From Asterias rubens (Eukaryota): 64,000 nucleotides of DNA. The stretch spans positions 1,240,001-1,304,000 of the forward strand of contig NC_047080.1 in the NCBI RefSeq assembly GCF_902459465.1, given 5' to 3'. Below the pieces are notes generated by a model, which ran no database searches, was not told the origin of the DNA, and saw only the letters and a program-made list of their open reading frames with translations. Both the position numbers and the translations under genes were made by a program. Positions 9,760 through 46,329 of the stretch are shown here, in pieces. The first letter of the stretch is position 1. Every line of letters starts with the position of its first letter.

Positions 9760-12700
9760 ATGTTCTTCAAGGGCTCAACAACTTGTCTTCTGTTTCTTAG
9801 CTTAGTCTGTGTCCAGATCCACATTTCACATGAGGAGCTGAGTACGGACGTGGACGAGGCCAGAGAGTTTTTGGCAAACTATGGAGCCACGGCTAAGGTG
9901 GTGTACTTTGCAAGTTATCTGGCTACCTGGTCATACTCTACTAACATCACCGATTATAACCAGCAAAAAGATGTATGTATTCTTATTTATTCGTTCAAAA
10001 TGTGTTTTTTACAGATCACAGACTGTCCCTTGCTGTACTATAAGACCATGAAACCCTTGATAAATGTTCATAAAAGAGCTATATAGAGCTTTTATTCCTG
10101 GTCGGGGTTGACTGACAGGCACGTTAGATACAAATCTGACATTAGAGATCGCACTGTCTGATTTTTTAAAACTTGTCATATTATATAAAAACTTGTTCAG
10201 CTGCTATTGTACCTCTTGAATGCATGCATGACACAGTTTCCAATTTGACCAGGGGTGGATTTCACAAAGGTAGTTCTAACTAAGAGATAGGACCAGTCCT
10301 AAGTTAGGACCAGTAACTCATCCTAACTTAGGACCAGTCTTATCTCTTAGCATTGCCTAGGACTAGTCCTAAGTTAGGACTACCTTTGTGAAATCCACCC
10401 CAGTCTTGCCTATCAGAAAGTTCATGGAATGCAAGGTCATGTTGACCTATTCAGTCTTGGTTGGCAAACTGGTTTATGGGCAGTTGTGGTTGTGTCGGTG
10501 TGTGCCAGTGCATTATCAATCGTGAAAATGGGTGGGATAGCTAGTTCGCACTTATGAATCTTCATATACTGAGTTGATGGGTTTTAAATGAGAAAATAAA
10601 TTGTTCGGGTTAATTTTTCAGTTGGAAGCCGGACTAGTCGCAGCCGCCTTCGACAGGGAAGCCTATGAGAACGCCACCAAATTTGACGAGACAGGTTTTC
10701 CAGATGACATTAAGAGACAACTTAAGAAACTCAAAGACATTGGATCTGCTGCATTGGAGCCTAGCAAAGTTGAAAGGGTAAGATATATTGCATTAACTAC
10801 GTGGGTTTTTGTATACTTGTTTTCAACTTCATCTCCTATTAAAATTGTGATCAGAACCCGGGACTAACTTTCAGGGTCCGGGCAGGCATTATTTCCACAC
10901 AAAAAGGATTTCCCCTTTCATTTTGTGTCAAGGGCAAAAGAGCAAGGTCGCTTGACTTTATTCGGACAAAGTGAAACTCAAGTCCAATCAAAATGGACAA
11001 GAAAAAGTGGGGCGATTTCAACTGGTGTTGTTTCACTTCTCAAAAAATTGCTTCAACTGTACCGTAATTTAGTGTTCACTTTCTCAATGGTATCTGTTTT
11101 TTATAGTACAATGAATTGACCAGCACCATGTCTGGAAATTACGGCTCTGCTTCGGTATGTCGACCGGATAATTCAAATGAATGCCTACAGATAGAACCCG
11201 GTATGCCCACAGTAACTAATACTTCCTTTATATAATTATTAATTTTTGTATAATTTAAAGGCAGTGGACACTGTTGGTAATTACTCAAAATAATTATTAG
11301 TATAGAACCTTTCTTCATGACGAGTAATGGGGAGAGGTTGATGGTCTTAAACATTGTGAGAAACGGCTCCCTCTGAAGTGCCATAGTTTTCGAGAAGAAG
11401 TAATTTTCCACGAATTTGATTTCGAGACCTCAGATTTAGAACTTGAGGTCTCTAAATCAACCATCTAAACGCACACAACTTCGTGTGACAGGGGTGTTTT
11501 TCTTCTTCATTATTATCTCGCAAGTTCGATGACCGATTGAGCTCAAATTTTCACAGGTTTGTTATTTTATGCATATGTTGAGATACAGCAACTGTGAACG
11601 CTAGTCTTTGACAATTACCAATAGTGTCCACTGCCTTTAACAACAATGGGTCACATTGGGAACTTTCCATAACACGTGTTTTCAAATTTTAATTGCATGA
11701 TGCTTTCTTATCAGGTTTGGGTAAAGTCATGGCTACCTCTGAAGACTGGGAAGAGCTATTGTGGGCCTGGCAAGGATTCCGAGATGAAGTCGGGATACCA
11801 AACAAACCACTCTACAGAGAGTATGTGGCACTGGCCAATGAAGCTTCTCGTCTCAACGGTACGTTTAGGCCGCGTCCAAAATGGCCGTTATGGCTACGGC
11901 TACTGTTGCTCAGGATATTATAGTCCTAGCGGCCTTATACTTTCGTATTATACTACAGTATCTGTGTACAGAGGAAGGGCTACTCAGGAGGTTGCTTTTA
12001 CATGTACATGTAGTTCAAAGCCCGCGGTGACTCGAAGTAAAGGAAGAAATGTTCACTCTAGACTTATATGAAGAGCATTTTGCAGAGCACTGCTAGCTTT
12101 ATTATAATGATCTCCGTTGCTGTTTTGGGGGCAACGATGACACTAAATATCCACCGGGAAAGTAAGGTATCTTGCAATGATATAATTGATTTATGCACAC
12201 AATTGCGATTTACTAAAATAATGTGTATTTCATTCTAGGTTTTTCTGACATGGGCGATTACTGGAGATCTGAGTACGGGGGTGATACCATTGCGCAAGCG
12301 TATGAGCTTTATAATCAGATCCTACCATTGTACAAGCAGCTTCATGCCTACGTCAGACGCATCATGAATACCAAACACAGCGATCACGTGGATCTAACTG
12401 GACGTATCCCAGGCAACCTACTCGGTGGATATGGCTAACATTTTTATTTTCATCATAAAGAACATAATATGTTTGTAAAGTAAAAGATGTCCAATTATCC
12501 ATCTCAGTTGAAGCATTTCAACGAACTAAATAAAATGATTCGTTGTGCTATCTTGTGCAATAATGTATCATTGCTGCACAAAGTATACCGTAACCGGTAT
12601 TAATCTAACCTATTTAGGTTCCCGATAGGCGACATTTTTCAAGCAACAACTGGGTTCGGCTTAGAGCCGTAACCAGCCTTTTTCTCGCAAGGTATTTTAA

Positions 12701-15700
12701 TGTTGAGATCTTGACAAGTCACGCGGAAATTATGTTCTGAATAAACGAAATCACAAACAAGGAATATTTCCTTTAGCCTATAATAAATGTGTCATTTACA
12801 ATCCATCTAGCTTGCGATTTATTTTTATTAAGGGCACTTTTGTGAACTATTGTTTGAAGTGAACTTATCTGCTTTGTTTACAGGAGACATGTGGGGTCGC
12901 TTCTGGGGCAACATCTACAAACAAGTTGTTCCTTATCAAGACGCCCCAAATATTGACGCCACGGACTCCCTTAGGGCAAAGGTAGTGATTGTAGCATTAA
13001 TAATACCCTCTTGGGATAGGTTCCAATAAGAGTATGGTAAGACCCCAATTAAGATATATAAAATGAGCGATAAAGTCTTCACATTTTGCTGGCTGTTTAC
13101 AACGGGAAGTCATTCTATAGCTGAAGTTCGGCTTACACGCAAAAGGACAGTAAAAGGTTTTGTTTCTTTTTCTTTTTAGAATATCACTCCACTCCAGATG
13201 TTTCAAATGGGCGATGACTTCTTTGCTTCTTGCGGATTGTCGAGAGTTAATGAAAAATTCTGGATTAATTCCATGATCGAAAAGCCAACAGACGGCAGGC
13301 AAGTCGTGTGCCACCCATCAGCCTGGGATATGCAGAGTGGCGATGATTTTAGGCAAGTAACCGGGCATTTGTAATACCGGTGTTTGGTTCACCTGCAAAC
13401 TATTCGAAATGAACAATTAAAGGTCCTCGGACAAGAAATCTACAAACTCCCCGGTATTGTCCCGATGGGCTGAGTCATCATCTGACCCTAACAAGGAAAG
13501 ATGGGACTTTGACTCAAATTCGGAATTTTGACCCATTTTTGGTCCATTTCGACGGTCATTTGACACAGTGACGGGTTACACTGACCCAGTATAGGGTCAT
13601 GCCCATGGTACCCAGATGCGCGTCATTCTGACCCGAATTGTTGTAGAGTTAATAAAGGAATAAAAAGTGTCACAACACTGACCATTTATTGGCCTAGTGT
13701 AACTCTAAAAGGATAACCTTTGTAAAGGATTTTCATTGTTCTTGTTCAGTATAGGATCAAGATGTGTACAGAGGTTACAATGGAGTATTTTCAAATCATC
13801 CACCATGAGCTTGGGCACACTCAATATGGTATGCAGTATAACGATCTGCCTTTCTTGTTCCATGACGGAGCAAACGGGGCCTTCCACGAGGCCGTGGGCG
13901 AAGTGATGTCATTGTCCGTTTCCACGCCTGCGCACTTGTCCCATCCGGATATCGATCTCTTGGACGCCGCAGGGACTGATTTTGGCAAAGGTAAAGTTAT
14001 TTAAAACCAATGTGTGTTAGCACGTATATTATGTAGGCCCACTTTCCAAATCAAAGCTCTCACGAAAAAAATAAGAGTGCAGGCCGTGCAACAAAAACCC
14101 TCGCCTACGGCTCGGGCCTTTATCACACAGCCTGCCGGTTTTAAACGGCCGTTTAAGGATCGTCACTACCCTTTGATTTCCCTTATTTATTGTTTTCGGT
14201 GTTAAATTTGCATCGGGGAAAAAAACGTTTTGTTTTAGGCCCTACCCACGCGTGTTTGAATTTGTAAGGCATCCATTTCATAAATAACATTAACGAGAGA
14301 TACTTTTGTTTATGATATTAAATAAGTATTGATGTTGTCAGAATTTTAAAGTTGAAATAAAACACTACCGAAAACCTCATTTCAAAAACATTGTATAACC
14401 TTTTAGAGACGGATATCAACTTTCTACTGAAGACAGCGTTGAATACAATTGGTACCCTGCCCTTCAGCCTCGCTTTGGATCAATGGCGATGGGATGTATT
14501 CGCTGGTAACGTCACTGAGGATAAATGGATGGAAAGATGGTGGCAACTCAAGTGAGTCGAGTGTTCTGATCTTCTTGAATGTTCTTATATTTAGTAAAAT
14601 CATTCGGTCCGTAATAAAGCGATTTCCCTCGACATTGCACTGTGTGTTTGAGGAAAATAACAAAATAGGTTTTTGCTAATAAAACAGTTGCTTGCAGTGT
14701 AGGGCCTACGCACTTGTCCACCATAATACATTAACTGACATAAACTGTTGAAGTTTGGGATCGACCGGCTATCTGGGTCACAATAAAATAGTGGGGGAAA
14801 ACGATTACACATTTTTGCATAACATCGATTTACAACAAAATTAGTAAAACGCTGACAATAAAACGGGAAATTAGTTTGATTTACTTCTCATCAAATATTT
14901 CAGAATATAAAGGAATGTTTTGTTCTATCATCATCATTTACCGTGTAGGTTTTATGTAAATGTTTTGTTCTAACCAATTCTGTAATTTCCTTAAAGCCTC
15001 TTGGTTATTATGTTTCATTATCCAGGCAGGACCTTAGTGGTGTAAAGGCTCCAGTGACACGGACAGAGAATGACTTCGATCCTGGTGCAAAGTACCACTT
15101 TCTGGTCGATTACCCGTTCATTGGGTAAAACAGCAGTTAATGTTTTATTAAATAATAGTTTGGATGAAATATTGGCAGACCTCAAATCTTAAAACCCTCC
15201 CAATTTTGGCAGAGCCTTCTGACCTCCCCTAAGTTCAATCATCCAAAAGGGGTTAGGTTGGTTTGTTAAATGTCACCATTGAAGGTTTTCTTCATTCGCT
15301 TTTCTCAAACACTAACATCTGCCTAACTTATCAATACTAAGTCAGCACTACAGGAATATCTAAGGTTTGTTTCTACGATTACAGTGTGGGGGAATTTAAC
15401 GGGGTAAATGTTTCATGATTCTGTAAAACGTTTGGAACTAAAAGTGGGTGAATTTTTATGAATGTCATTTTCTTCTTTTCTTAAAAGCTATTTCATCCGT
15501 ACGATCATCCAGTTCCAGTTCCAGAAAGCGATGTGTGACGCAGCGGGACATACGGGACCTCTACATCGATGTGACTTCTACAAGTCGCAGGAGGCAGGAC
15601 AGAAACTCAAGTAAACCATCATTATTTTCCCCCACATTTTCAAATATTCTAATCATTCAGTCTTTGACCCATCCATGGAATAAAATAACTTGTATTTGGT

Positions 15701-16321
15701 TGTAATTTTGTGTTGGGTTTAAATATTTATCTTAACAATAAATGATTTTTAATAATTATTTTCAGAGCTATGCTGAGTTTGGGATCAAGCAAGCCCTGGC
15801 CAGATGCAATGGAAGCCATTACAGGTCAAAGGTTAATGACAGCAGACGCCATCAACGCCTACTTTGCGCCATTGAAGACATGGCTCGAAGAGACCAACGA
15901 GAAGAATGGAGAGAAAATTGGATGGGAGACTCAGGGTAAGTTGTCAGTCAATCCCTTTAATTTTCAAGACGTTACAATGTTTTATGCACTGCATTCACTT
16001 GTTCGTCGAATTTGTTTTTATTTTGCTAGCCATAGTAGGACGATATCTCGAGTCAAACCTGGGCTAGTGTTTTGCTATCATGTTAAAACTACCAGTGTCA
16101 AATGTTTTTAATTTGTTTTTACAACTTCAAATTGTTAAAAGCAAATGCAACCGTCCACGTGCACAGATTATTATTCAAATCGTTCGTTCAAACCGTCAAT
16201 GCTTTGTACTCTGTTGGCTTTCACAGATCCTGGTACGGATTCAGCTAATTCCGAAGCGACGATGTCGCTGTTTTTGCTGCTACTGTGTTTGGTAGTAGCT
16301 ACACGGTTCATCCGAAAATAG
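9760..16321 (+). CDS. ACE2-like: Single-domain M2 family peptidase, copy A (ACE/ACE2 family), 643 aa, signal peptide and GPI-like tail
   Basis: 13 exons: 9760-9972, 10622-10777, 11107-11200, 11715-11858, 12239-12424, 12884-12981, 13180-13352, 13755-13990, 14407-14551, 15026-15124, 15488-15610, 15766-15935, 16227-16321; phases all consistent. HELGH zinc motif plus FHEAVGE third ligand intact. Confidence 0.93.
10253..10400. mobile_element. Harbinger-like MITE with CAG target-site duplication
   Basis: TIR gggtggatttcacaaaggtagt...actacctttgtgaaatccaccc; CAG at 10250-10252 and 10401-10403; second copy at 20427. Confidence 0.8.
11259..11636. mobile_element. Kolobok-like MITE (TTAA TSD), copy 1
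   Basis: TTAA|aggcagtggacac...gtgtccactgcct|TTAA; near-identical copies at 27376, 54066 and 60414. Confidence 0.85.
13400..13650. repeat. Dispersed gaccc/gggtc-rich non-autonomous element family
   Basis: Repeated tgaccc/gggtca motifs; similar blocks at about 31020-31410, 34990-35150 and 46090-46290. Boundaries approximate. Confidence 0.45.
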
Positions 16322-17288
16322 TTGGTATACACTCAATGGAAATATCGGGGTCGGTCCTTAGATTTAACATAAGTCATAGAGGTACTCTGATCAAATCTCC
16401 GATGTTTACCGAAACAAGTTCGGTGAGCCAGCAAGCACTCTTCCATTTAAATGTAAGAACTTATATGAAGTCTTAAATTTACAAACAATTATTAAACTTG
16501 AAGGAGACATAATGGTTTGAACAAAGAGAACATGATTAGTAAAGGAAACATGGTACTGATATTAAAGGTGAATGTATTTTATTCAAAATTAAGAAGAGAA
16601 GTACTTATAGTTTTAAACTGTTCACTGTCCAATACGATCAGCACACTCTATTCGACTTGGGAAAAAAAGCGATCCTGATTCAAAAGCTTAGATTCATCTT
16701 AACCTGTGTACCAATCCTAATTGCTGAGCAAAGTGTGACATGACAATAGAAATAACTTTGTGGTGATATTGTCAACCCAACAAAACAATCTTATTTTGTT
16801 TCCCATTTTCTGACGCTTTTTTGTTTATTCTCGAAATAATTTGTTTCTCTTATGAGGTTTGAAGCTTGGTTCGAATGTGTTTTAAAAAGATATAATGTGA
16901 TAAAACGATAGATCTTCAAGGACTTGCCTGTAGCAAGTCCAATCCAGTTTGAGCTGCCCTAATTACCACTGAATATAACTGTGTTATTCACTAGACATCT
17001 TTAAGTTACCTTTAAGTTTAAACTGAACATAACGGATTATACAATGATTTTCTGCGATGCTTTGAATTGCATTGTAAAATATTTTAGTTACGCATGTGAT
17101 GGCTGAATTCCGCAAACCATGTCCTTTTGTAATAATTGATTTGAAAACAGTTGCACAAATAAGTTTAGTTAGTAACAAGTTTCCCCCCAGAGAAAATTTT
17201 AAATATGACATCACGTATCCATGGCAACAGATTTTGAAATGTCCATATCACCTGTTGATGAACCTGTACAGGTAGCGCCCTCTATAGG

Positions 17289-20200
17289 TCACCTTTTGCC
17301 AGATGATATGATCTCGCCAATTCTACCCAGAATGCTGGCAAGGAGGTCAAATGTGTACTTGGCAGACTGGAGGACCTAAGAAAAAAGTTAAACTAAATTA
17401 TTACTTGAGAAAATAAAGTTAGCTGTAGCAAACTGCTTATCAACCAAAATGACCTACGGTACAAAAGCAAACAATATAACTTATAAGTGCAATGGGTTCT
17501 TTTGTATCATGAGAACAACTGAAATAATAGTTCCCAGGTTTAAATTGTGGAAACACTCTTTTGTTTTGTAAACCGTAAGACGATACACAGGAAACTTTAG
17601 AGTGTACGCCAAGTAAGTTAAATGCTTACCTTGTATTGCTCTGCAGGGGGCATCTGAGGTAGATCCTGACCTCCAACATTTAGTTTCACCGTCATCTGTT
17701 TTTTCTCTGATACAGCTGTAATCAGAAACACATTTGTTGATCAGGAATGCTATATGAAACCTAGTTAGGGTTAGGGTAGGTCCAAACAATTGAACACAAA
17801 CTAGACTTGTTCAGTCTAATGAGAGCCTACCTTGTCGTACTTCTGCCTGAGTTGCTTTCATCTTAAGATCATAATGAGCCTTGGACATATCTAGGCATGT
17901 ATGAAGAGGTTGGAGGTAGGTGGTCTGTAGCCAGTCTACCCGGGACCAGATTCCAGTTGCATTCTTATCTGGTGTGTCTCGTAGAAACAAGTAGCGAAGG
18001 AAATTCAAGGCACCCATATGCCTACAAACAAATCAGAAGGAAACATTTTTATCTGAAGAATTCGCATGTCATTAATTGAAAGCAACCTTTCTGAATCCAT
18101 CGAAATTGTATTTGTGATATTGAACTCAAAAGATGAAACAAAATACACTATGAGTTATTTTAGAAGAGCAGCCATTTTGATTTATTAAACTTTAACCATG
18201 TCTTATATATTGGCATCAGCAGTGGCTTTGGCTAGAACATGTAGTAATACAGTAAACTCCTATTCTTCATTGTAGTCATTACAGCCAAAATACGTAGCCG
18301 CAGCCATTGTCATTTGAAGTAGTACAACTCCATTAAATTAAATAATCTGTTTGAGGAAATCCTGTGAATTTGAATGTCTTTACTGGCTGAATATAATCCC
18401 GGTTTTCAAATAATGAAAACAATATAAAAGTATTGTGTACTTACTTGTCTGCTTCATGCAGTAAATCCGACTGGATTCCTTCGTCCAACTTGAAGATGAT
18501 TGTGAACAATTTATGAATGTGGCATCCACCAAACCATTCATTGCTCGATTCACTCTGAAATGAAACCATGTTACTGTTACTCACAACTGCAAGATGGACC
18601 ACAATTATGTACAATAATTTTCAAAGATGTGCCATCTTATACGGTGAGGTTTGCGGTAACACCATGTAAGTACTATCTCTAAATGAGTTGGGGCGGTTCT
18701 AAAAAGAACCGTTGGTTTTAACTTGATGTTTCAATCAGTATGCTCTGATTGTCTTCTGGAGAAAACAAAATAATTAACAAATAAATTTATCCAACCAAAA
18801 GTATCAAAAATGAGGCTGGGAGGAAAAAAATAGTCTGGTCCCTTTGTAGGAAATGGTTATCAACCATCTTGATCATATTGTGTACTAGAAACCGGACTGG
18901 AATTATGTAGTTTACATTTTCTGATTATTGATTGCTGTACAAGAGAATGAACGTATGTATGTATGAATGATGTCCATTCATTTTAGCAGCTCATATTTGT
19001 ATAAAATAAATTTCTATAAGTCAAGAGGATTCCAAGTACTGACTTCCAGTAATTATTTGTACCTGCAATGAGCAGTGGACATAATCTTTGATTTTCCCGA
19101 TGAGCATTCCTCGTACACCTGAATGTTCGGAGCTTAGTAGGAGGGATCGTAGTATGTGGTAACGACCTTTCCAATTAAAACAATCTATGTAGGAAGGCAG
19201 GATGGAGACAGCTTTTCTTCTCTGATGAAAAAAAAGATGACGGGTAAGAATGAGTTGTTAAAATAGAATTGTTAAATCTCTGACAAAACTTTGCATTTTT
19301 CTTCTGCAAATAGATATTTGACATTAACCAATTTCCCCAACATTATTTAATATTATTTTGAGATAAAGATTTATAGTGATCATATGTATTTTGTTTGAGT
19401 AATAAACAGAAACAAAAGTTGCAAAATAACCTTCTAGGTTATACTGAGCCAACTTCTCATTTCACGATGGATGACTAGAACAACATTTTGTCGTCTAGTT
19501 ACTGAATCACAATTTATTTATTTGTGTTCAATTTATAATCATAGATGTTAAATCAATGTTTGTAAATAAGAGATTGGCTCTTGCTATCTTGGTATTTATA
19601 TCCCCTTGTGTGAGCTTTGCCAAGTTCCCTCGTCGAAAGATTATAAAAACAAGCAAACAAACAAACACTGTCTGATGAAACACCTGTTGTTTAAACACCT
19701 GTAAATACTTACAATTGACTTTGAAGGGCACATGACCATGATTTGTACTAAACACTGTGGGACAAGTAGCAAGTTCTGCCTTGTGTCAATGAGGCTGGAA
19801 TCCAGTGATTGATCATCTAGACTCTTCACCAGCGACGAAAGAAGCTCCTACACCAAAATAAATTTGTAAGTTTGTAAATGTTGCATACTAAGAAAATAAT
19901 ACTTGTCAAGACTCATAACTCGGCTAAACATCAACATTGATATCTCTGAAACAACTTTGAAGTTGAACTTGGTTTGCAGATGGACAAAATTGACCTAGGT
20001 TTTTCTCCCACATCTAAAGCTGAAACTTCCTTCCTTGTCTTCCCTCCAATGGCTTCTTAGCTAGTATAGTGAATAAGTTTGCTTTTTTGAGAATCCTTGA
20101 CTTCAATGAAATGAAAGATTTATCAGACAGTAAATACTTACAAGGCCCTTAAAGATAATAGATTCCTCCGGTCGTCTCAGCATTCCCTCAACATATGGCA

Positions 20201-23200: not shown

Positions 23201-25101
23201 ACTTGTATAAGTCAATTTCCATCAGCAATACCCTAAGCTGCAGGGCTAACATAATCACAGGAGTTAAAAGATTCACAACAATGTGAGACTTTTAGCACGC
23301 TTGGTGGCAGCAGACTTACCAGGTAACATCCATTGTTCTCGGTCATTTGCGCGCGCTCAGAACTACGCAAACAATAGACATTTACCTGGTAAGTTTGCTG
23401 CCACCTGGTGTCCCAAAGTCTCCCATTATGACTTGCTGGACATCTTATGATTTACAATACCTCTGCAAGACGGGTGATTATCTCAATGCAGTTTCTATAC
23501 ATCTCATCATTCTGTTCTTTCTCAGATAGATGAGGACAAACAAGAGGTAGAAGATCCCATGCTATGTACTCCACCAAACCCTGAAGATCAAGGAATCATT
23601 GAAAACAAAAGTACAACAAGATTTATGATTTAATCTATGTTCAATTTGCATCGGGGTTAAAGAATAGTCATTTGGGTTTTTATCCATTATGCACTGTTGT
23701 GTTTTAGCACTGTATACTCAGTTCTTACACGAGTTCTGTGGAAAAAAATTAATGATGCATCGAGATAAAGAGTTTTATTGTTTATTAATTAAGCGCTGTA
23801 CACTCAGTACTTTCCTGAGTTCTGTGAAAAAAATCCACAGGCATATCACTTGGGCCCCTGGTTGGGGACTCAAACCACGACCTACATGTATGTCAGGCTG
23901 GAGCAGATGTCTTACCTAGTATTCAAACTGCCTCTAGCCACCAAGCCAGCTCAAGTCTAGCTGTAAGGACATCTGAGACATGGCAGCCATATGCCTGTGA
24001 ATATTTTTCACAGGACGCAGGGAAAGTACCAAGTATACAGTGGTACATGCAGTGAAGGTCAAAACTCAAAATAGGAAGATATAGGAGCCAAGTATAAACA
24101 AATTACTTTCTTACAAATACATAGTGTACTGACCTTAAATTCTTCATCACAGATGATATCCTTGAGTTTATGAGAATTTCCTTGATCCATACACTCCTTG
24201 ACGGACGATAAGACGATGAATGTGTCTTCATGGCGGCTTTTCAATGACTGCACAGACAACCCTCTCTAGAAAGTGACAAAAAACAAAACATCATTTTTAC
24301 TCCATGTGGAATTGTTATAAAAACATGGGCTCCATGGGTGCAACATTCCTTTCAACAGAACAAAACCCAAAACTAAGAAGTAAGATAATAATCTTCTTAC
24401 AATACTTTTATGTTTAAATTGTTTCAGTTTCTTAAACTAATAAATATCCTCTAGAGTCCAAGAGTTGTCTACAAAAAACAAGGATGCTAAAAGAAATCAA
24501 AATAAAACTCTTCTTAATTTTTTTAGTAAAACTTTACTTTCTTTTCTTTTACTAAAAAAAAAGTATATATACATGTATAGGGCCTAACTGATGTATGCCG
24601 ATTTATTAATGTTCTTATCTAATAGTGTCTGAGTCTGACTGCTAAATCAAACTGAAACTGTTATTTTTTAAAGCAAAGTTTTACTTTCTTTTCTTTACTA
24701 AAATCTAAATTCTAAAAAAGTATTATAATAGTTATACTGTATCTGCCGATTTATATTAATGTTCTCATCTTGTGTCTGACTGCTATGTATTGTTATTAAT
24801 GTCTATAAAAAGCTAGTAGTACTAACACAACAGCACAGTTTGATGATTATAAATATAATGCATGTTCTTTGGTGGATTCTGTGTATGTATGATTATGAAT
24901 CAAAATGTATTCGTCCGTCCGGAATCTGGGCAACATGTCTATTTTAGTGCTATACACAATGAGATGAGAGCGATGGTTACAACTTGAATAACTCTACATC
25001 ACCTGATAAATTATGCCACTTTGTAATAGAAAATACCAAACAGCGATCCGTTAAATAACGTCAAAATAACTTACGAAACCTTCGACGGAATTCGTCAACA
25101 T
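17289..25101 (-). CDS. GLMN: Glomulin (FKBP-associated protein, RBX1 inhibitor), about 650 aa
   Basis: 15 exons (plus-strand coordinates): 25075-25101, 24134-24265, 23461-23580, 22867-22960, 22060-22313, 21807-21850, 21371-21551, 20793-21040, 20142-20226, 19713-19847, 19063-19221, 18445-18554, 17831-18021, 17630-17715, 17289-17375. Motifs LGSPKEMFIGLLE, PEESIIFKGL, EHSGVRG, MGALNFLRYL, LDMSKAHY and YTFDLLASILGRI match vertebrate glomulin. Confidence 0.92.
20427..20672. mobile_element. Harbinger-like MITE, same family as 10253, with a 76-bp internal tandem duplication
   Basis: Same TIR; flanks CAG and CTG; unit starting cacaaaggtagtcc occurs at 20437 and 20513. Confidence 0.8.
23303..23405. 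mobile_element. Short palindromic MITE in a GLMN intron
   Basis: ggtggcagcagacttaccaggtaa...ttacctggtaagtttgctgccacc inverted repeat. Confidence 0.7.
23820..23950 (-). mobile_element. tRNA-derived SINE remnant
   Basis: Reverse strand reads ggcttggtggctagagg...ggtcgtggtttgagtcccc (A-box and B-box like). Confidence 0.45.
24525..24790. repeat. Degenerate tandem duplication (about 145-bp period) in GLMN intron 1
   Basis: ttttactttcttttctttactaaaa...tgccgattta(ta)ttaatgttct...tctgactgcta occurs twice. Confidence 0.6.
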
Positions 25102-25598
25102 GTTGACAATCGCAGTTGTACCGAATTAAGTCAATTGAGGGCGCCCTTCTCGGATTTTGAGGCTGGAGCAAGCTCGAGCTGTCACGAGCTAGCTGAGCGC
25201 GTCGGGGGGGTGACCCCGCCCACCTCCCTGAAACCATGGAGCAATAGTTTATTGCTCCATGCTGAAACCATAGTATGGCCTAACATTTAGTTATGATCCT
25301 GAGGAAACCGAACAGCCTTTATATTTGCAGAACTATCCATGTGACAGGGAGTTCAGCCACAAGGCCTACTAAAACATGCTAAAACTAAATCATGAGCTGC
25401 AATAATTACCACCTCATCTTCCTAGATGGTGATGAGGCGTAGCCAACATGAAGATGAAGCAGACGGGCGCCAGCATGAATTTTTCTAGACTTGTGATCCT
25501 TCCAGCAATTACACTGAGTGATACCTACCACTGTAATTTGGGGGGGGGGGGGGCTGCGAAATTGAAGCCATCATCAGGCAAAACAGTCACGTGTTCAA

Positions 25599-25900
25599 GT
25601 GGTTAGACTGCAGAACTTGCAATCACAAGAATGTGGGTTCGAATCCCCCAGCTAATCGCTGATTTCACAATGACTAGAATAATATATTGTCGTCTAGTTA
25701 CTGAAACACAATTTCTTGATTTGTGCACTTCATAATCATAGACGTTAAACCAATAATAGTATGAGAGAGATTGGCTGTTGTCAACTTGGTGTTTATATCC
25801 CCTTGTGGGAGTTTGCCGAGTTCCCTTGATGGGAAGATCATCTATTACACACCAAAACCAACTGAAACCCAATACTTTTACCCTCCGCTGTGTCACAGTT
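25599..25900 (+). mobile_element. tRNA-derived SINE
   Basis: gtggttagactgc...gggttcgaatcccc head; body gatgactag...gtcgtctagttactgaa also present at about 19470-19620. Confidence 0.55.
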
Positions 25901-26088
25901 ACTTTTTGACCTCACACCAAGTCTGCTTTTCATTAAAAGCTTTGGGACCAGATGATCATTATTAAAAAATTACTGGTGTGGAAAATTTAATTATGGCACC
26001 ATTGAGATACGAAAGACGAATGTGTGTGCGCAGGCTCTTATGACAGCAATAAACTTGTGTAAAGTTCAGGTGGTTGTTATGTAGCCTG

Positions 26089-26229
26089 TAGACTTGTGGA
26101 CATGTCGTTTAATGTTCGTGCAGCAGCAGTAGACCAGTACGGGACCAGAAGTCTTGCGAGCACGGTTTCGGGTTACAGGAGGAGCTGTTTACACTGCGAT
26201 AAACATTTAACGACATGTTCACAAGTCTA
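26089..26229. mobile_element. MITE with tagacttgtggaca TIR (related copy at 28248-28494)
   Basis: tagacttgtggacatgtcgtttaatg...catttaacgacatgttcacaagtcta. Confidence 0.65.
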
Positions 26230-26390
26230 GGTCTGTGTCAATTGAACAGAAAACGACTATACCAGATACCCGCATGATCATGAGCACTATGCAAATAAAC
26301 ACATTGTCGGACAAAGTCACAACCTAACCCAACATCTGGCAGCTTCGATTTTAGGAGTCGGGGAAGGTTCCATACTCGGGAGCCAACAAG

Positions 26391-29300
26391 ATGTTTTCCT
26401 ACTATTACTGTACTTATATCCTCTTTATTTGTGTAGCCTCTTTACAAGTCAACCTATCACTTGGAGATGAGGAGCTTATAACGGACATTGATGAGGCGAG
26501 GGCGTTTTTATCCCGCTACGAAGAAAGTGCCAAAGTGGTATACTATGCCAGCTCTCTGGCTAGTTGGAAATTCAACACAAATATCACCGATTACAATCAG
26601 CAAAAAGATGTAAGTAAACACACGCATTGATTGTTACATTTTGACAGTGTAGGACTAGACCTATAGTTTACTGCTGGTACAGACCCGGGGAATTCGGCCT
26701 ATAGTCTATGTCAATCTAAAAGCATGTTGTATGTTGTACGAAAGTTTGGAACCTCCCTATCATCTTCTGACCCAATGGTGCCCGGTTCAAGGCGTCAAAC
26801 ATCCTTTAAATGAGCAGTCAATGTTGCATTTCTTTAAATGAGCAGTCAATGTTGCGTTTCTTGTTCATAATACGCACGGTACTTTAAAATTGGCCCTTTT
26901 TTGATACTTGAATATTTTCGAAATTTATTTTGTTTGGGAGGGTCTACTGGCTTCAAGAGACATTTGCATTTTCCTTCCTCCATGTTTGCATGAAAATTTG
27001 ATGTGACAATCAATTTTACAACTATCGGGGCATGTGCACACATACATTGGTAAAACAAAATAGTCGAAAACGGAAATTTTTAATTAAAGCGACTTCAAGA
27101 GACTTTTGCATGCAAATTTGATGTTTAAAATTATATCAAGTTCCCTATAACCAGGACGTATGTATACAAACATTACTGGGGGAAAAAAGAGGCGAAATGT
27201 ACTCTTTTGATATGTTGTTTTGGAGGATGTGAACAGAATTTTGCAAAAGAAAAATCGTTTCTGTTTCTGTTGCAATTTTGTCAAGGTCAAACCATAGATT
27301 GACTAGACGTCTATGCCAGAATACACATAGGGATCGAGCCTACCTGTTCTTTTAAAAAATTTCTGATTGACTTAAAGGTAGTGGACACTATTGGTAATTA
27401 CTCAAAATAATTATCATCATAAAACCTTTCTTGATTACGAGTAATGGGGAGAGGTTGATAGTATAAAACATTGTGAGAAACAGCTCCCTCTAAAGTGACG
27501 TAGTTTTCGAGAAAGAAGTAATTTTCCACGAATTTTATTTCGAGACCTCAAGTTTAGAACTTGAGGTCTCGAAATCAACCATCTAAACGCACACAACTTC
27601 GTGTAACAAGGGTGTTTTTTCTTTCATTATTATCTCGCAACATCTACCACCGATTGAGCTCAAATTTTAACAGGTTTGTTATTTCATGCATATGTTGAGA
27701 TACACCAAGTGAGAAGACTGGTGTATGACATTTACCAATAGTGTCCACTGTCTTTACTGAATATTTAGTATGAATGAAAACAAATTCATAACTCAATAAT
27801 AATATGTAAATTGTTGTATTCTAACTCCATTTGAAACGAGGATTGGCTTTAAAGGCACTGGACACCTTAGGTTAATGCCAGAGGCCAGTATTCACTTGGT
27901 GTATTCCAACTTGCAGACAATAACAAACCTGTGAAAGTTTGGGTTCAATCGTTCATCGGAATTGCAAGAGAATTTTGAAAGAATGACACCCTTGGTGCAC
28001 AAATTTGTGTGCTTTCAAGTGCGTAAGAAAAGGCTTGAAGTCTTTTCTTAGAAATTACCTTTCTCAAAAGCTACATTAAAGAGTAGGGAGATGTTATGCT
28101 ATCAGCAGCTCTCCATTGCTCGATACCAAGTAAGTTTTTACAGTTTTGTTCACTAATACCAATAGTGTTCACAGTGCATTAAAGGCAATTTGGCTTCTGT
28201 GTCCTTGCTCTATGCTGTGACACATGACGAAAAAGTTAGGCATGAACTAGAGTTGTGGACAATATTCGTGAAAGGTCACACGCGGTGAGAAAGTCGAGTT
28301 GTGGAGGTGCTCTCGCGAGATCACTGCTCTCGCGCGAACTGCTGGTTACCCGATTATCTGCTCCTCACTCATCATCAACGGGAGTAGAAGTCAGACAACC
28401 AGCAGTTCGCATGAGAGCAGTGATCTCGCGAGGGCACGCCACAACTTGACTATTTCCACCGAGTGGGACCATTAACGACTTGTCCACAAGTCTAGGCAAG
28501 ACCCAGTCCAAAAGGTGGCTCATGTTACCCTGGACCTTCCCCTCCCAATTTATGATCGAAATAATTCATTCTCGAAATAATTCATTCCTCTCGATGATAA
28601 TCATGAAGTATCATTCTGATTCATGGGTCATTATGTCAAACTTGATCAAACAAAACCAAAATAAGCGATCTCTTATGTAAATAGCGCCTACCAAGTTGTG
28701 CTGTTTGCACAATCCCGACTACCTTTTTAGTTGAAATTAAAGGGAAGTCACGTGAAAGATAATGCAGTATATGACGCACCAAAAGGTCGCAACCGCATTA
28801 AATCAACAAATTCACGACTATTATCTTATCTATCGTGTTTTTATGGTCGAAACTAAAGGATTTCATGATAATAAAGTTCGGGTACTTGCATATCACTTAT
28901 CGACACTTGAGAATTTTAAATTGAAGTGAAATAATTTATTGCCACTTCATTCCAACGCCTCCCCTCCGATCCCCATACTGCCCACAAATTGTATTATGAA
29001 TAATATTTTCATTTATATTATATCCCTCCCTTTTCCTGAGTGTACCCCTGAGATTCGGTTTCAGCCATAAGTAAATAATGACATTAATTTGTTGTCAAGG
29101 CTTGAACAAAACAATCGTTTATATTCTTCCAAGCTTGAAGCCAGTCTCGTGTCAGCCGCTTTCGGAAAAGAAGCTTACGACAATGCCACCAGATTCGACG
29201 AGACTGGTTTTCCAGAAGACATCAAGAGACAGTTCCAGAAACTCAAAGACATTGGATCTGATGCACTGGAGCCTAGCAAAGTTGAAGAGGTAAAGATTAA

Positions 29301-32300
29301 TTTCTTGCCCACTTATTTACACCTTTTTGAAACCTAATTGCAGAATGTTCACTTTCCTTACTTTTGTTTCGTATTTAGTACAACCAGGTCATTAGCAAAA
29401 TGACCGACAACTATGGCAAAGGTACGGTGTGTAGACCGAATGATGCAAGCGACTGTCTTCAAATTGAGCCGGGTAAGCCTGTACTAGTGCAGCTCACTTT
29501 TTCCATTTTTCTTGAAACTCGAAACACACTTTTGTGATGACGGTTCTAATGATTTAAATTTTGGACTTTGTGCCTCACGATTTGGTAAAGTCGAACTTAT
29601 AAAAAAAAATTAAAGTACATGTAATACGTATGTCCTGTAGCTATAGCTTACCGGGCCGTTGTTTATACCCATGTTCACCGTCATTAAGTTGTGTTTGTCC
29701 CATTCTGCAATGTTTTTTTGTTTTTTCAGGTTTGGGTAAAATCATGGCTTCTTCCGAAGACTGGGATGAGCTATTGTGGGCCTGGCAAGGATTCCGAGAT
29801 GAAGTCGGGATACCAAACAAACCACTCTACAAAGAGTATGTGGCACTGGCCAATGAAGCTGCTCGTCTAAATGGTAGGGTACCTACAGTCAGTGTGCTTT
29901 AAAATTTCTCATAATTTATTTTATTACAGTTTAATGCTTTGCTGGTAATAAAGAGAATTAACACACTATTAGCAATCTCCGTTCACACGATGGTCGGCCA
30001 ACTATATGGATTTAATAAAATGATCAAATAATATTGAATTTTTCTCGATCTCACTGGATACTATGGAGTATTGTGTACCTGTGCTTTCAGCCAGTAAAGG
30101 ACTGTCCTATGCCTATTCATGCCTTACCAAACATAGGCCTATATCATAGTCTGCTTAACTGAATACGTTTCAATTCTCGTCTTTTCTCCAGGATATGCTG
30201 ATATGGGCGAGTACTGGAGATCCGATTACGAGAGTGAAACCATCATTGCGCAGTCGTATGAGCTTTATAATCAGATCCTACCATTATACAAGCAGCTTCA
30301 TGCCTACGTCAGACGCATCATGAATACCAAACACAGCGATCACGTGGATCTAACTGGACGTATCCCATCCAACCTACTCGGTGGGTTGATTTATTACCTC
30401 AAGTTTGCCTTCAGATGCAAAATAGGCATATTATAAACAAAAGTCATTAAAAAAAATATAGGCCAATGACGATATTTGTAAGAAAATAACCCCACTGATT
30501 ATTATAGTATTATGACGCACAAAGAAACGACCGTCATCATCACAAACACCTTGGTTCATAATATGAATTAGGGTAAAAGGAAAACTGTGTGTTATATCAT
30601 GGAGGTAGCAAAAGTGTATGTGTATGGAGGTAGGAAAAGTGTTTGTGCGCATTTTGGGCGACGTGATAATACATCACAGATATGGTTTTGTTTTAAGAAA
30701 TTCCAAAGTCTGAAACTTTACCCGTTATATCTTGTATGCCATTTATACTGCTAAGCTGTATTTCATGACTAAACTGCTGCAATTTTATTACAGGAGACAT
30801 GTGGGGTCGCTTCTGGGGCAATATCTACAAACAAGTTGTTCCTTATCCAGACGCCCCAAATATTGACGTAACCGATGCTATGATTGAAAAGGTAAATAAA
30901 AGTAGCCAAGTGCCTTGAACTCAAGTTGGTTATGTTCCAAACTATTTGCCGAATAAAAACTGGTTGAACTGTTTGAGAACCGATCGCAAACCTATTGCAA
31001 TATTTTCGGAAACTACTTTACATTTCACCCTGCACTCCCAGGTCAGCTGACCCAACTAGGGTCACGATGTGCCTTTTGCATTTTTTGGTCAGGCTGCCCT
31101 GGAAACTGGTTTTAAAGGTAGAATTAAACTCGTAGTTAACGTCTTTTTTAGCCATTTCTGGGTCATTTTGACAGATTCTGCGTCATACTGCCCTGGGGTC
31201 CCGGAATTTTGGTCATTGTGCCGGGCGGTGTCCCGAAATTCTGTCCACCTGAGATTTATGCCCCTCGGCGAAAATGTACGTGGCCTGATGGAGGAGAATT
31301 CAAAAGAGGGCGCATTCAAAAGAGGTTTGTACACATGTCTCGACATCAGAATGGGGTCCGAATCTCCGGGGGGGGGGGGGGTTCTTGCCACACCGGGAGT
31401 GTTATAGTGTGGCCAACAGCATGAATTGATTCGATGGTTGGGGCAATAAACCGAGTCGACATGAAATCTAAAATCTGTGTTTTATACTAAAGGGGTTAAC
31501 TCCCTTGGAGATGTTCGAAATGGGTGACGATTTCTTCGCTTCCTGTGGCCTGATACGAGTCAATGATGCCTTCTGGAATAATTCTATGATTGTTAAACCT
31601 ACTGATGGCAGGGAGGCTGTTTGTCACCCAACAGCCTGGGATATGGGCAACGGTGAAGATTTTAGGCAAGTGAACAATGTATACTTGGTTCATGCTTGAT
31701 TCTTTAGCACCTCTCATAGAATCGAATAATGTGCCAAACAAGATTTTTGTAAACAAAGGCATTTTTTCAAAGCAGTCAAACAGCTGATCAGGCCGAACAG
31801 AGTTGCTCATCATACGAATGACATGTTCCTGTTTGTCTGAAAAAAATGTGATTAAATAATATCCCCAAATCGATATTCAAAGTTCTTTTAAACTATGTAC
31901 TTTTTTTAATGCGTTTTTTTGTTTTTGTTTTCAACTATAGAAAGTTTCACAATTTTTTTGTATAATAAATTAAAAAAATAATTAGGTCTAACCAGGTTTA
32001 ATAAGTGATTTTTTTACGCCTTCATTGTAGAATTAAGATGTGTACCGAGGTCAACATGGAGTATTTTCAAACCATCCATCATGAGCTTGGCCACATACAA
32101 TATTACATGCAATATAAAGATATCCCATTGCTCTTCCACGGTGGTGCCAATGGGGCCTTCCACGAGGCCGTAGGCGAAGTGATGACACTGTCTATTTCTA
32201 CGCCTGCGCACTTGTCCCATCCTGACGTCGCACTTCTTCCCCCAGGGACTGGTGCAGATAAAGGTAAATAATGACATTATTATAACTTCAAAGCCGGAAA

Positions 32301-34958
32301 CAAATCTCTCAGAAAATGTTATTGTTGAGCAGAAAAAAATGTGTTTGTCAACTGGGCCTATTATGTTATTTATGTACACGATTCTTAAGTAAGCAAGTTG
32401 CAATACACGGTGTGACCTGTGACATCACATGTTTACAAGAGAGCCACAGAGCCTGGACTTCCTGCAGGCACGATTTGTACACAGCTCAAACATAAAATCT
32501 TATATTATATGGAGATTGCACTGTCTAATTCTTATCAACTTTTGATGAAAGGGGCTCATCTCAAAAATTGTCAAGCTTTTACTTTCAGGATTTTATGTGG
32601 AAATATGACACATGTCAACTTTCCCATTACCCACAGGGCCATTGTAGTATACTGCCTGCCAGAATACTCAAAGAATGCAACAAGTTCACACTTATTGTAA
32701 ACAAGGTTCACATGGTCTATACTCTCAGCAAACCTTTTGTGCCCATTACCTGCTCATGGAAATTGAAATAAATACAATTTTGCATGAATACGAAAATAAG
32801 TCACTACAATTTACTAACGTCGATCACTCTATAAAGTACACAGAGTGGGGATTTCTTTTAGATAAAAAGCTGACACGTTTATTTTCCTTAAAATACATTC
32901 AGAGACTGATATCAACTTTCTACTGAAGACAGCGTTGAATACAATTGGTACCCTGCCCTTTAGCATCGCTTTGGATCAATGGCGATGGGATGTATTCGCT
33001 GGTAACATCACTGAGGATAAATGGATGGAAAGATGGTGGCAACTAAAGTAAGTTGAGTTTTCTGAAAACAACTTTATGCAACTGTCATCCATTTTCGTTT
33101 TGAGCAAAGTAGGTGGAAGGTTGCAATAGCTTATTCAAAACTTTGTTATTTATTGGTGTATTGACTATCTTGTCATACTTTCTCCAGGCATGATCTTGTT
33201 GGTGTAAAGGCTCCAGTGACACGGACTGAGAATGATTTCGATGCCGGTGCAATGTACCACATCGTCGTCGCTTACCCGTTCCTTGGGTAAGTATAAGCTG
33301 CGTCTATAGCCCTTTTTGAAATCACGGCTTTGGCTTTGGTTCCGGCTTTAGGCTCCGTTCTCTCGTCTGAAGCCATGCGCGTATACGCAAAGCACGTACA
33401 ACTGTCAAAACAACCACACGGGGCCAAGCTAGCCTATGCCGAATCTGGAGCCGTAGTCGTTGATTTGTAAAGGGTGTATGATTTATAGTTTGGTAGTTCT
33501 GTAGGCCAGTGGTGTGAGCTTATATTTAAATAAATTTTATCCTACAGGTATTTCATCCGTACGGTCATCCAGTTCCAGTTTCAGAAAGCATTGTGTGACG
33601 CAGCGGGACATACGGGACCTTTACATCGATGTGACTTCTACAAGTCGCAGGAGGCAGGCCAGAAACTCGAGTAAGAATGTATACGGTTGTTTATACTAAA
33701 CAAGTTGCTATTACTGCAACCGCAGTAGGTATATTGCTATAGCCTCAGCATTGTCTCTGTCGGGTAATGACGTCATTACTATTTTTTAACATAGTAATTT
33801 ATATTGCATATTTGTTGTTTTTTAAGTTGTTGATTTAACTTGTTTTTTTTTTAGAGCTATGCTTAAGTTGGGAACGAGCAAGCCCTGGCCAGATGCAATG
33901 GAAGCCATTACAGGTCAAAGGTTAATGACAGCAGACGCCATCAACGCCTACTTTGCGCCATTGAAGACATGGCTCGAAGAGACCAACGAGAAGAATGGAG
34001 AGAAAATTGGATGGGAGACTCAGGGTAAGTTTAGGTCCCGGTCAACATTACATGGTTTTTAAAAATTAAGTGTTCATATAACGCACTAACCTTTGCATTT
34101 TACCATTTTTGTGTTGCTGATCTTTTGTTTGCCCTTTTTAGAACGAGTAATGTAAACGCTGACAAGAGTGTTAGTGGGTAATGTGAACTGCTTTTGTGGG
34201 TTTTGTGAAGGTTTGCATGATTTGAAACACAATAAAATACGTTTTTAATATTCCTATCACAGTATCAACTTTGTTTTATGGAATCCTTTGGCACGGTGTC
34301 AGTGGAACCTGTCGATCGTTGGACCTCTGTGTCTGGCGGTGCTTAATAAGTAAAGCACGAAAATAAGCATGGAACCTGTTTGTGAATTTGCCATTATATT
34401 TACTCAATCCATTTCCTTTTAACAAAAATTGTTTGCACTTTATTTTTACGTGTATGCTGCACATGGCATGGTTAACTATCCACTTCTATTTTCCCACTCT
34501 GGTACGCTTATATCAGCTTCACACTCGTCAAACCACGTGCATGCAATTGTTTTTCAAATTTTCCAACTGAATGGTAATCTATCAATAGCGCTTATGCATG
34601 AAGCGCCTCCTTTAAATAAAATATACCGCAAATCATCTCAGGAAACCGAGTACAGTTAGAATAAACTCAGCTGCCCAAATGTATGCCATGTTTTAAAGCT
34701 GTGTACGACCGTGGTTCTCCGTTTGTATCTTGGACTCGAATTTCACCCAGAATCCTTTGCACGCCGATCATGCGCAATGGGACATGTGGGTAATTTCTCT
34801 CTTAAGTACACGCACGGTTCCTTTTTTTAACTGTCTAAAACAAGATGTTGTTTTTGCTATACACAGAACCTGACGCTGGGGATGGTGCTTATTTACTACC
34901 TGGTGTATCCATGCTGTTGCTGGTCTTATGTCTGATAGCTACACGGTTACAAATGTAA
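26391..34958 (+). CDS. ACE2-like: Single-domain M2 family peptidase, copy B (ACE/ACE2 family), signal peptide and GPI-like tail
   Basis: 13 exons at the same positions as copy A: 26391-26609, 29134-29289, 29379-29472, 29730-29873, 30192-30380, 30794-30891, 31493-31665, 32031-32263, 32903-33047, 33188-33286, 33548-33670, 33855-34024, 34867-34958. HELGH and FHEAVGE intact. Confidence 0.93.
27376..27753. mobile_element. Kolobok-like MITE, copy 2
   Basis: ttaa|aggtagtggacactattggtaattactc...caatagtgtccactgtct. Confidence 0.85.
27853..28178. mobile_element. Diverged Kolobok-like element (related subfamily)
   Basis: ttaa|aggcactggacac...gtgttcacagtgca|ttaa. Confidence 0.5.
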
Positions 34959-44955: not shown

Positions 44956-46329
44956 CTTTGAAATCAGTCTCGAAAAAGCGGTTCAATGTGATTTTTTTTC
45001 TAAATAATGATGTTGCGACTGCCATGCACCGCCCTAAATACAAGAAATCAGTTTGCTCCGATGTGAATTCGTGAATGTAGCTTTAGTGCAGTTAACTTCA
45101 TTCTTAATTTCCTTTTTTATCATGTGGTCACTCTAGTCACGTGTGCCGTCCGTAGTATGAAATCAGTGATCTTCGATCGTTTTCATTAGTCCAGAAAATA
45201 TACGTCATCACGAGGCGAAGACTATACGCCCATCTAATTGGGGACGGCAGGATAAAGGGGCTAGGTTACTTGCGAGATGCGTCAATGGGGAATTTCGAAC
45301 GAATTGAAACTCACTTCAAGATACTTTTATGAAATAGTTGGTTAATATTAATGACACTGGTATATTCTTGGGTCCATTCTTAGTTTATTGTGAACGCGCA
45401 CCTTACGATTGCAACGCCGGGGGTACTAAAAGATGATACTAAATTTAGGGCCGGATATAAAACAACAATAATTTCAAATTATTTACATTATCTACATTAT
45501 TTTTCAATAATGAATGCAGGTGATTTGACAAAGATAGTCAAATAAGTGGATCTGGTTGGTTCTTGTGTTCTTTACAAGGAATCAGGCATACGTCTAGAGA
45601 CCAACAGTTTGTTTCGTCATTCGATATTTATAAGCAACATTATTTTCGATAAATCTATTGATCACCTGAACGAGGCGTGAATTCGTAAGTTACTGCAATC
45701 ACTGTTTATAGTTTCTGACGACATAACCTTGGCTGCCATTAAAGATTCTTTAACTACTATTCAATGATTGTGGACGTTGTATGTCGGAGTAATTATAAAC
45801 CGTCCTTCGTGATGCATATTATTCCCGGCCCATGACTGACGTGACCGCCTCGCCAATTTACTTGCAATTCACTGTGGCCTGAGATTCTCTACATCAAGCA
45901 TTAAAGACCTGGGCTTAATGAATTCGCCAGGAGATTGTCAATTACTAAGGTGACTTGATTAATTAATTATGTGATTAGTGACAATGGTAATTTTAATCAA
46001 TATTGTTTGTCGCGTGTTTGTGCATAAATTATAATTATGATTACTTGGTTTGTAATAATCCGAACAACCGAAATTGAAATTTAAAAGCCATGTCTCACAA
46101 ACACGCGTGGGTCAGAATCGACCTGGATCACGGGTCCCGGGGTCTGATGGGTCAAGCTGACCCGGGAAAACGATGACCACTCGGATTGTCCGTACGGTGG
46201 TCAGTTTCACTCATTTATATGCTCATTTTGACATGGACTCTGGGACCAAAATGGGCCAGGTCCCTGCCAAGGGACCCATAGGAGGTTTTTATTACGTATA
46301 TACAGCAACATCGTTTTAAACTCCAGGGT

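Follow-up and report, generated by a model that had tools for sequence, protein, structure and literature searches.

The analysed stretch of Asterias rubens DNA (the window; 64,000 nucleotides, positions 1,240,001 to 1,304,000 of the forward strand of contig NC_047080.1, RefSeq assembly GCF_902459465.1) contains two neighboring genes for peptidases of family M2, the family of angiotensin-converting enzyme (ACE) and ACE2, which are referred to here as AstA and AstB. The tandem pair fills positions 9760-34958 on the forward strand, with the ATG of AstA exactly at 9760 and the stop codon of AstB exactly at 34958, and both reading frames are intact across 13 exons each. The data are best explained as a whole by two intact peptidases of the ACE2 lineage that are probably tethered to the cell surface and would release one C-terminal residue from their substrates. 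Exon models were built with the sea-urchin homologue P0013 as guide and with scoring of GT/GC-AG junctions, giving the following features:

9760-16321, forward strand: AstA, ACE2-type M2 peptidase of 643 amino acids, ATG to stop in 13 exons (spliced model against P0013)
9760-9972, 10622-10777, 11107-11200, 11715-11858, 12239-12424, 12884-12981, 13180-13352, forward strand: AstA exons 1-7
13755-13990, 14407-14551, 15026-15124, 15488-15610, 15766-15935, 16227-16321, forward strand: AstA exons 8-13
26391-34958, forward strand: AstB, ACE2-type M2 peptidase of 644 amino acids, ATG to stop in 13 exons (spliced model)
26391-26609, 29134-29289, 29379-29472, 29730-29873, 30192-30380, 30794-30891, 31493-31665, forward strand: AstB exons 1-7
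32031-32263, 32903-33047, 33188-33286, 33548-33670, 33855-34024, 34867-34958, forward strand: AstB exons 8-13
13353-13754 (AstA) and 31666-32030 (AstB), forward strand: intron 7 of the GC-AG type, donor AG/GCAAGT, the best join in both copies

The AstA translation was identical in all 643 residues to the RefSeq protein P0183, annotated as "angiotensin-converting enzyme-like" from A. rubens. AstB has an orthologue in A. amurensis (P0176) with 99% identity over the aligned domain, and its model was borne out by transcript contigs from four runs of three studies, in which every splice joint downstream of exon 6 (seven in total) was observed. A single contig of 3810 nt spanned exons 6-12 consecutively; both the joint to the tail exon (34024/34867) and the 365-nt skip of intron 7 were present in all four runs. 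The GC-AG intron 7 was kept in both copies, i.e., across the duplication, and the exon phases match between the two genes. The encoded proteins share 77% amino acid sequence identity, and the ratio of nonsynonymous to synonymous substitution rates (dN/dS) was 0.23 at a dS of 0.56, indicating that both copies are under purifying selection and that the duplication is not recent.

For the assignment of pocket residues, 253 M2 domains were aligned to one profile and numbered on rodent ACE2, with motif positions equal to those of human ACE2. The replacement of Gln281, Lys511, and Tyr520 of ACE by Arg273, Leu503, and Phe512 in ACE2 turns a dipeptidyl carboxypeptidase into a mono-carboxypeptidase (structural review, PMC7642307). 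The active-site motifs were located in the window as follows:

12883-12906 (AstA) and 30793-30816 (AstB), forward strand: GDMWGRFW, read in the sequence
12898-12900 (AstA) and 30808-30810 (AstB), forward strand: Arg codon equivalent to ACE2 R273, inside GDMWGRFW
13309-13329, forward strand: CHPSAWD of AstA, read in the sequence
31622-31642, forward strand: CHPTAWD of AstB, read in the sequence
13801-13902, forward strand: zinc site of AstA, composed of HHELGH (13801-13818) and FHEAVGE (13882-13902) with the third zinc ligand Glu and E406
32077-32094 and 32158-32178, forward strand: zinc site of AstB, composed of the equivalent HHELGH and FHEAVGE
15084-15098, forward strand: GAKYH of AstA with Lys (codon AAG) at the position of ACE K511/ACE2 L503, adjoining the catalytic His505
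33246-33260, forward strand: GAMYH of AstB with Met (ATG) at the same position 503

The GDMWGRFW motif is letter-identical to residues 268-275 of human ACE2, whereas the corresponding segments of the two human ACE domains are GDMWAQSW and GNMWAQTW. The motif (D/A)YPF(I/L)GYFIRT is interrupted between G and Y by intron 10 and becomes readable after exon joining. Residues at the diagnostic positions are given in the order ACE2, AstA, AstB, human ACE C-domain:

Position 273: R, R, R, Q
Position 274: F, F, F, T
Position 346: P, P, P, A
Position 347: T, S, T, S
Position 406: E, E, E, D
Position 481: K, K, K, R
Position 503: L, K, M, K
Position 510: Y, Y, Y, V
Position 512: F, F, F, Y
Position 514: R, G, G, R
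Position 518: R, R, R, S
Position 519: T, T, T, F

Both copies hold the zinc ligands H374, E375, H378, and E402, the catalytic residues H345, H505, and Y515, the C344-C361 pair, and the ACE2 chloride site R169/W477/K481. Among the aligned domains, 111 carried Arg273 (R-type) and 133 the ACE-like Gln (Q-type), and ten positions, this one included, co-varied as a block across phyla. R-type domains nearly always have F274, E406, K481, a residue other than Lys at 503, an aromatic residue at 510, F or M at 512, R518, and T519, and Q-type domains have the ACE alternatives. From this block, in which position 346 is Pro or Ala, AstA and AstB carry Pro346, Thr/Ser347, Glu406, Lys481, Tyr510, Arg518, and Thr519. 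The ACE2-type residues listed in an earlier reading of the sequence alone were thus all recovered in both copies, together with F274, K481, and a non-Tyr residue at 512; two departures from the ACE2 pocket had been overlooked there, namely K503 in AstA and G514 in both copies. With respect to the R273/L503/F512 triad of ACE2, AstB has Arg/Met/Phe and AstA has Arg/Lys/Phe, so that beyond R273 only half of the dock is changed in AstA. Lys503 was found in two of the 111 R-type domains, which are AstA and its own RefSeq copy, and the residue is Met in AstB and in the A. amurensis orthologue of AstA. Gly514 replaces an Arg (ACE R522/ACE2 R514) that contacts inhibitors and substrates and is conserved in both ACE and ACE2; it occurred in 15 of the 111 R-type domains, in members from sea stars and sea urchins. 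The two copies differ from each other in the pocket at positions 347, 371, and 503. G514 in both enzymes and K503 in AstA may shift the specificity.

In a Pfam scan, AstA (P0183) matched PF01401 (Peptidase_M2) at residues 29-609 with 790 bits, a full-length match (positions 2-581 of the 581 in the profile) above the curated cut-off; 801 bits were reached by P0176, the orthologue of AstB, and the PF01401 matches in the window fell exon by exon. Peptidase_M2 was the only domain found in the two proteins, with no match to Collectrin (PF16959), which scored 237 bits in the rodent ACE2 control. Searching the whole 417.6-Mb genome with the PF16959 profile gave no match either (exon-by-exon six-frame search, from which short or divergent exons could escape). 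Both proteins start with a signal-like hydrophobic segment and end shortly after the catalytic domain:

15920-15934 (AstA) and 34009-34023 (AstB), forward strand: GWETQ, read in the sequence
16227-16321, forward strand: last exon of AstA, linker and C-terminal hydrophobic tail (spliced model, RefSeq identity)
34867-34958, forward strand: last exon of AstB, linker and C-terminal hydrophobic tail (model and transcript joint)

As the sequence-only reading had stated, the proteins stop soon after GWETQ in a hydrophobic tail; the remaining 31-32 residues comprise a linker of small polar residues (DSANSEA or DAGDGA in the two copies), a hydrophobic stretch of 14-15 residues, and 5-6 final residues. 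Small omega-site residues, a short polar spacer, and a hydrophobic stretch near the C-terminus agree with the layout of a signal for a glycosylphosphatidylinositol (GPI) anchor, apart from the partly charged final residues. In echinoderm, hemichordate, and many crustacean relatives the terminal hydrophobic stretch is followed by 0-6 residues, often by none. The tail probably directs attachment of a GPI anchor or represents a minimal membrane anchor, and AstA and AstB are therefore predicted to be cell-surface ectoenzymes. One contig in one run used a donor at 34177, 153 nt past the normal exon-12 donor of AstB (window 34025-34177). The read-through of exon 12 leads to a stop codon at 34060-34062 and to a protein that lacks the hydrophobic tail, and this form may be a soluble isoform. 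RefSeq contains tail-less isoforms for the orthologues from Patiria, Acanthaster, and A. amurensis; the alternative 3' exon of the soluble A. amurensis isoform (ending in TQEQVM) was not found within 2.5 kb.

Phylogenetic trees were calculated under LG+C20+F+G4 with posterior mean site frequencies (PMSF) for alignments from which 9 or 12 signature columns had been deleted. The 46 R-type domains sampled all fell on one side of a branch with an ultrafast bootstrap value (UFBoot) of 100 and a Shimodaira-Hasegawa-like approximate likelihood ratio (SH-aLRT) value of 100. When the tree was rooted on seven bacterial M2 sequences, the R-type clade, including both sea-star genes, was recovered at 100/99 (UFBoot/SH-aLRT). 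It comprised vertebrate ACE2, amphioxus, hemichordates, every echinoderm class sampled, and crustaceans (decapods, krill, a stomatopod, an amphipod, an ostracod, a copepod, and branchiopods). The bacterial homologues (among loci L005-L084) were Q-type with the ACE-type Q/K/Y dock in 74 of 74 cases, and the seven bacterial sequences in the tree formed a clade of their own, separate from that of animal ACE2. In approximately unbiased (AU) tests, a single clade of all echinoderm M2 sequences was rejected (p = 0.0004) at a cost of 78.8 log-likelihood units, as was a single clade of all arthropod M2 sequences (p = 0.002). No R-type domain was found among the sampled hexapod, chelicerate, mollusc, annelid, and nemertean M2 sequences, for which sampling was shallow. 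Ten further fragments with Glu at position 406 were assigned names in search of additional phyla and gave only echinoderm, krill, fish (sturgeon, flagged as contaminant), and unnamed sources.

These results support the assignment of AstA and AstB to the ACE2 rather than the ACE lineage. Since protostomes and deuterostomes occur both on the ACE-type side and within the ACE2 clade, the duplication that gave rise to ACE and ACE2 is most simply placed before the protostome-deuterostome divergence. The sequence-only reading had left undecided whether ACE2-like residues predate the collectrin fusion or arose independently of it. The first option is favored by an R-type clade that includes collectrin-less invertebrates, and an origin of these residues within echinoderms only is rejected by the AU test. 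Nesting within the ACE clade, with the same residues widespread there, was not observed: the signature was absent from all 133 Q-type animal domains and from all 74 bacterial homologues. AstA and AstB were sisters in the tree, each together with its orthologue from A. amurensis, and their joint sister was a gene from Patiria/Acanthaster; the duplication is confined to the Asterias lineage. An older paralogue retaining Arg514 was detected in two other sea stars, Patiria and Acanthaster, whereas none of the five M2 genes of Asterias represents it.

The A. rubens genome contains five M2 genes in total, and none of the three outside the window is R-type. Two paralogues on another contig (C3) have GNMWAQQW and GNMWSQSW, both with FHEAVGD. 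As these two are of the ACE type, enzymes of both kinds occur together in the sea star. One of them (P0355, at 22.72 Mb) forms an ACE-type lineage with P0358 from Acanthaster that is marked by the signature QQGDKTYRS. In the bacteria-rooted tree, this lineage branched below the split of the remaining animal ACE-type and ACE2-type sequences (99/91), which could reflect either an ancient third lineage of M2 enzymes or a long-branch effect. The third gene, a divergent paralogue on contig C8 (8.617-8.625 Mb, locus L003), has GDMWSSKW with Ser-Lys at positions 273/274. Its K511 position is occupied by Ile, FHEAIGD is changed to FGEAIGD, and the carboxylate dock of this paralogue is neither ACE-type nor ACE2-type.

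In comparison with vertebrate ACE2 (MEROPS M02.006), the sea-star pair shares the clade, the zinc site, the catalytic His and Tyr residues, the single chloride site, and R273, F274, P346, T347 (Ser in AstA), E406, K481, Y510, F512, R518, and T519. Both also have a single catalytic domain with a signal peptide and a membrane tether, the latter two predicted for the sea-star pair. They differ in that the sea-star enzymes lack the collectrin neck, the transmembrane segment, and the cytoplasmic region, and instead have the short tail described above; in addition, they have Gly for Arg514, HHELGH for HHEMGH, and, in AstA, Lys for Leu503. The invertebrate ACE-like enzymes (AnCE, Acer, leech and oyster ACE), which are dipeptidyl carboxypeptidases, share the M2 fold, the catalytic machinery, and approximately 45-50% sequence identity, and most of them are single-domain proteins like AstA and AstB. 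ACE-type enzymes are distinguished by the Q281/K511/Y520 dock for the P2' carboxylate, A354, D415, V/T518, and S526; AstA and AstB have the ACE2 alternatives throughout except for the Lys of AstA, and the chloride-II ligand Arg522 of ACE is replaced by Gly in both.

Collectrin-less ACE2 orthologues with one M2 domain that group with vertebrate ACE2 have been described from amphioxus and Ciona by Fournier et al. (2012, PMC3354321), who dated the ACE/ACE2 duplication to chordates and whose sampling included no echinoderms, hemichordates, or crustaceans. The amphioxus protein in our sample (P0196) shares the R/F/E/R/T signature and the clade with AstA and AstB but differs in Met512 and in a basic, non-hydrophobic tail. 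In the same study, bacterial M2 enzymes were grouped with invertebrate ACE2, and bacterial ACEs were proposed to derive from it; the Q-type bacterial sequences placed outside the ACE2 clade in our trees fit poorly with this proposal. No literature on ACE2-type enzymes from echinoderms, hemichordates, or crustaceans was found, with thin coverage of subscription journals, and a paper on the shrimp LV-ACE is silent on whether the enzyme is of the ACE or the ACE2 type. A search for look-alikes in the ESM Atlas returned generic M2 clusters only. The genes themselves are already held in RefSeq, where the A. rubens protein is named ACE-like and several relatives from sea stars and acorn worms ACE2-like (automatic names).

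We infer a mono-carboxypeptidase activity of AstA and AstB from the following model. The zinc ion would be held by the HExxH motif and the additional Glu, and catalysis would be aided by the equivalents of His345, His505, and Tyr515. The equivalent of Arg273 would fill the S2' pocket and bind the C-terminal carboxylate of the substrate. The carboxylate dock of ACE (Gln281, Lys511, Tyr520) would be dismantled, being replaced by Arg/Met/Phe in AstB and Arg/Lys/Phe in AstA. Because of this loss, the enzymes are predicted to trim a single C-terminal residue, rather than a dipeptide, from peptides whose carboxylate is free, to act at the cell surface, and to ignore classical ACE inhibitors. Amidated peptides do not offer the free carboxylate that Arg273 should require. 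No angiotensin system is known from echinoderms, and the transcriptome runs carried coded labels that give no tissue. A digestive or another role is as plausible as the role in neuropeptide processing suggested in the sequence-only reading.

Several observations weigh against the proposed ACE2-type mono-carboxypeptidases. Our literature search retrieved no enzymology for any R-type M2 protein from non-vertebrates, and the assignment of the activity therefore rests on analogy of residues. The taxa were selected and the groups for the AU tests defined after a first tree had already been seen, and the deep order within the ACE2 clade departs from the species tree, with only moderate support. The protein tails terminate in TRFIRK and TRLQM, and such partly charged ends are atypical of GPI signals. 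With Lys at the K511 position of AstA and Gly at the Arg514/Arg522 position of both copies, the pocket is no faithful copy of that of ACE2. The last point leads to an alternative that we regard as unlikely: AstA and AstB would belong to the ACE2 lineage without being strict mono-carboxypeptidases, as G514 and, in AstA, K503 would reshape or reopen the S2'/S1 region, resulting in mixed mono- and dipeptidyl activity or shifted substrates, with the two copies sub-functionalized. The rarity of both residues fits this view, in particular K503, for which AstA stands alone even with respect to its own A. amurensis orthologue, as do the pocket differences between copies that have diverged to 77% identity. 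However, R273 and F274, which are held to block S2', are intact, Phe512 stands in place of Tyr520, and the carboxylate dock of ACE would hardly be restored by Lys alone, in the absence of Gln281 and Tyr520.

Two further explanations would do without ACE2-type catalysis altogether. Convergent acquisition of ACE2-like residues by an echinoderm ACE paralogue, leaving AstA and AstB ordinary dipeptidyl carboxypeptidases, would agree with the RefSeq name and with the phmmer search, in which AstA scored slightly higher with the human ACE C-domain (631 bits) than with any ACE2 chain (≤616 bits). This difference, though, is in keeping with the long stem leading to vertebrate ACE2, and the placement in the ACE2 clade persisted with either set of signature columns deleted (100/99-100). 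Together with the rejected all-echinoderm clade and the co-variation of ten positions as a block across phyla, this renders convergence highly improbable. We give even less credence to the possibility that one or both copies are non-catalytic, as a pseudoenzyme or a decaying duplicate retained for a binding or chaperone role. Decay is frequent in tandem duplicates and vertebrate ACE2 has non-catalytic roles, but the frames are intact over 13 exons, every zinc-binding and catalytic residue is kept, the dN/dS ratio is low, and AstB is spliced and expressed; moreover, the vertebrate chaperone role resides in the collectrin domain, which AstA and AstB lack. The reading as catalytically intact enzymes of the ACE2 lineage that would release single residues is preferred.

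Collectrin was confined in the present sample to vertebrate ACE2, lamprey included, and was absent from amphioxus; the fusion thus looks like a later addition on the vertebrate stem. The sequence-only reading had spoken of a chordate collectrin fusion, whereas the present sample points to a vertebrate one. Synteny gave no support either way, as no known neighbor of vertebrate ACE2 (CLTRN, BMX, PIR) was among the other genes of the window:

5806-7557, forward strand: C2H2 zinc-finger gene
40684-44982, reverse strand: DOMON and copper type II monooxygenase gene (DBH/MOXD-like)
56163-57812, reverse strand: torsin-family AAA protein
60197-63998, forward strand: TPR-CHAT protein, running past the end of the window

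Repetitive elements were observed within and between the two peptidase genes. In intron 8 of AstB (window 32273-32844), the summed depth of transcript contigs reached up to approximately 88,000, as against 10-250 on the exons to either side, and loose ends were numerous. The element looks like an abundantly transcribed dispersed repeat; no second copy was found in the window, and Rfam and tRNA scans revealed neither an Rfam family nor a tRNA. Two pairs of near-identical inverted repeats of 28-29 bp were located at 10252-10280/10373-10401 (AstA intron 1) and 20426-20453/20645-20673 (intergenic). With arms spaced by approximately 90-190 bp, both look like the terminal inverted repeats of a small element resembling miniature inverted-repeat transposable elements (MITEs).

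ACE2 has been studied heavily in human, and its pre-vertebrate history is thinly described. The advance made here is incremental, given that the genes are in RefSeq and that the idea of a collectrin-less ACE2 has been published for amphioxus and Ciona. On balance, we lean towards a scenario in which the ACE2 lineage is as old as bilaterians and its ancestor was a single-domain, probably GPI-anchored mono-carboxypeptidase that survives in echinoderms, hemichordates, amphioxus, and crustaceans, with collectrin added later in vertebrates. The ACE2-type pocket is indicated to be an old, conserved invention that exists without collectrin and without angiotensin; if this is true, the carboxypeptidase function of ACE2 would long predate angiotensin. 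The sea-star duplicates, diverging in the pocket by K503 in AstA and carrying G514 in both copies, may yield new specificities. As a natural collectrin-free ACE2 from tractable marine models, the pair would lend itself to probing the ancestral substrates of the family.

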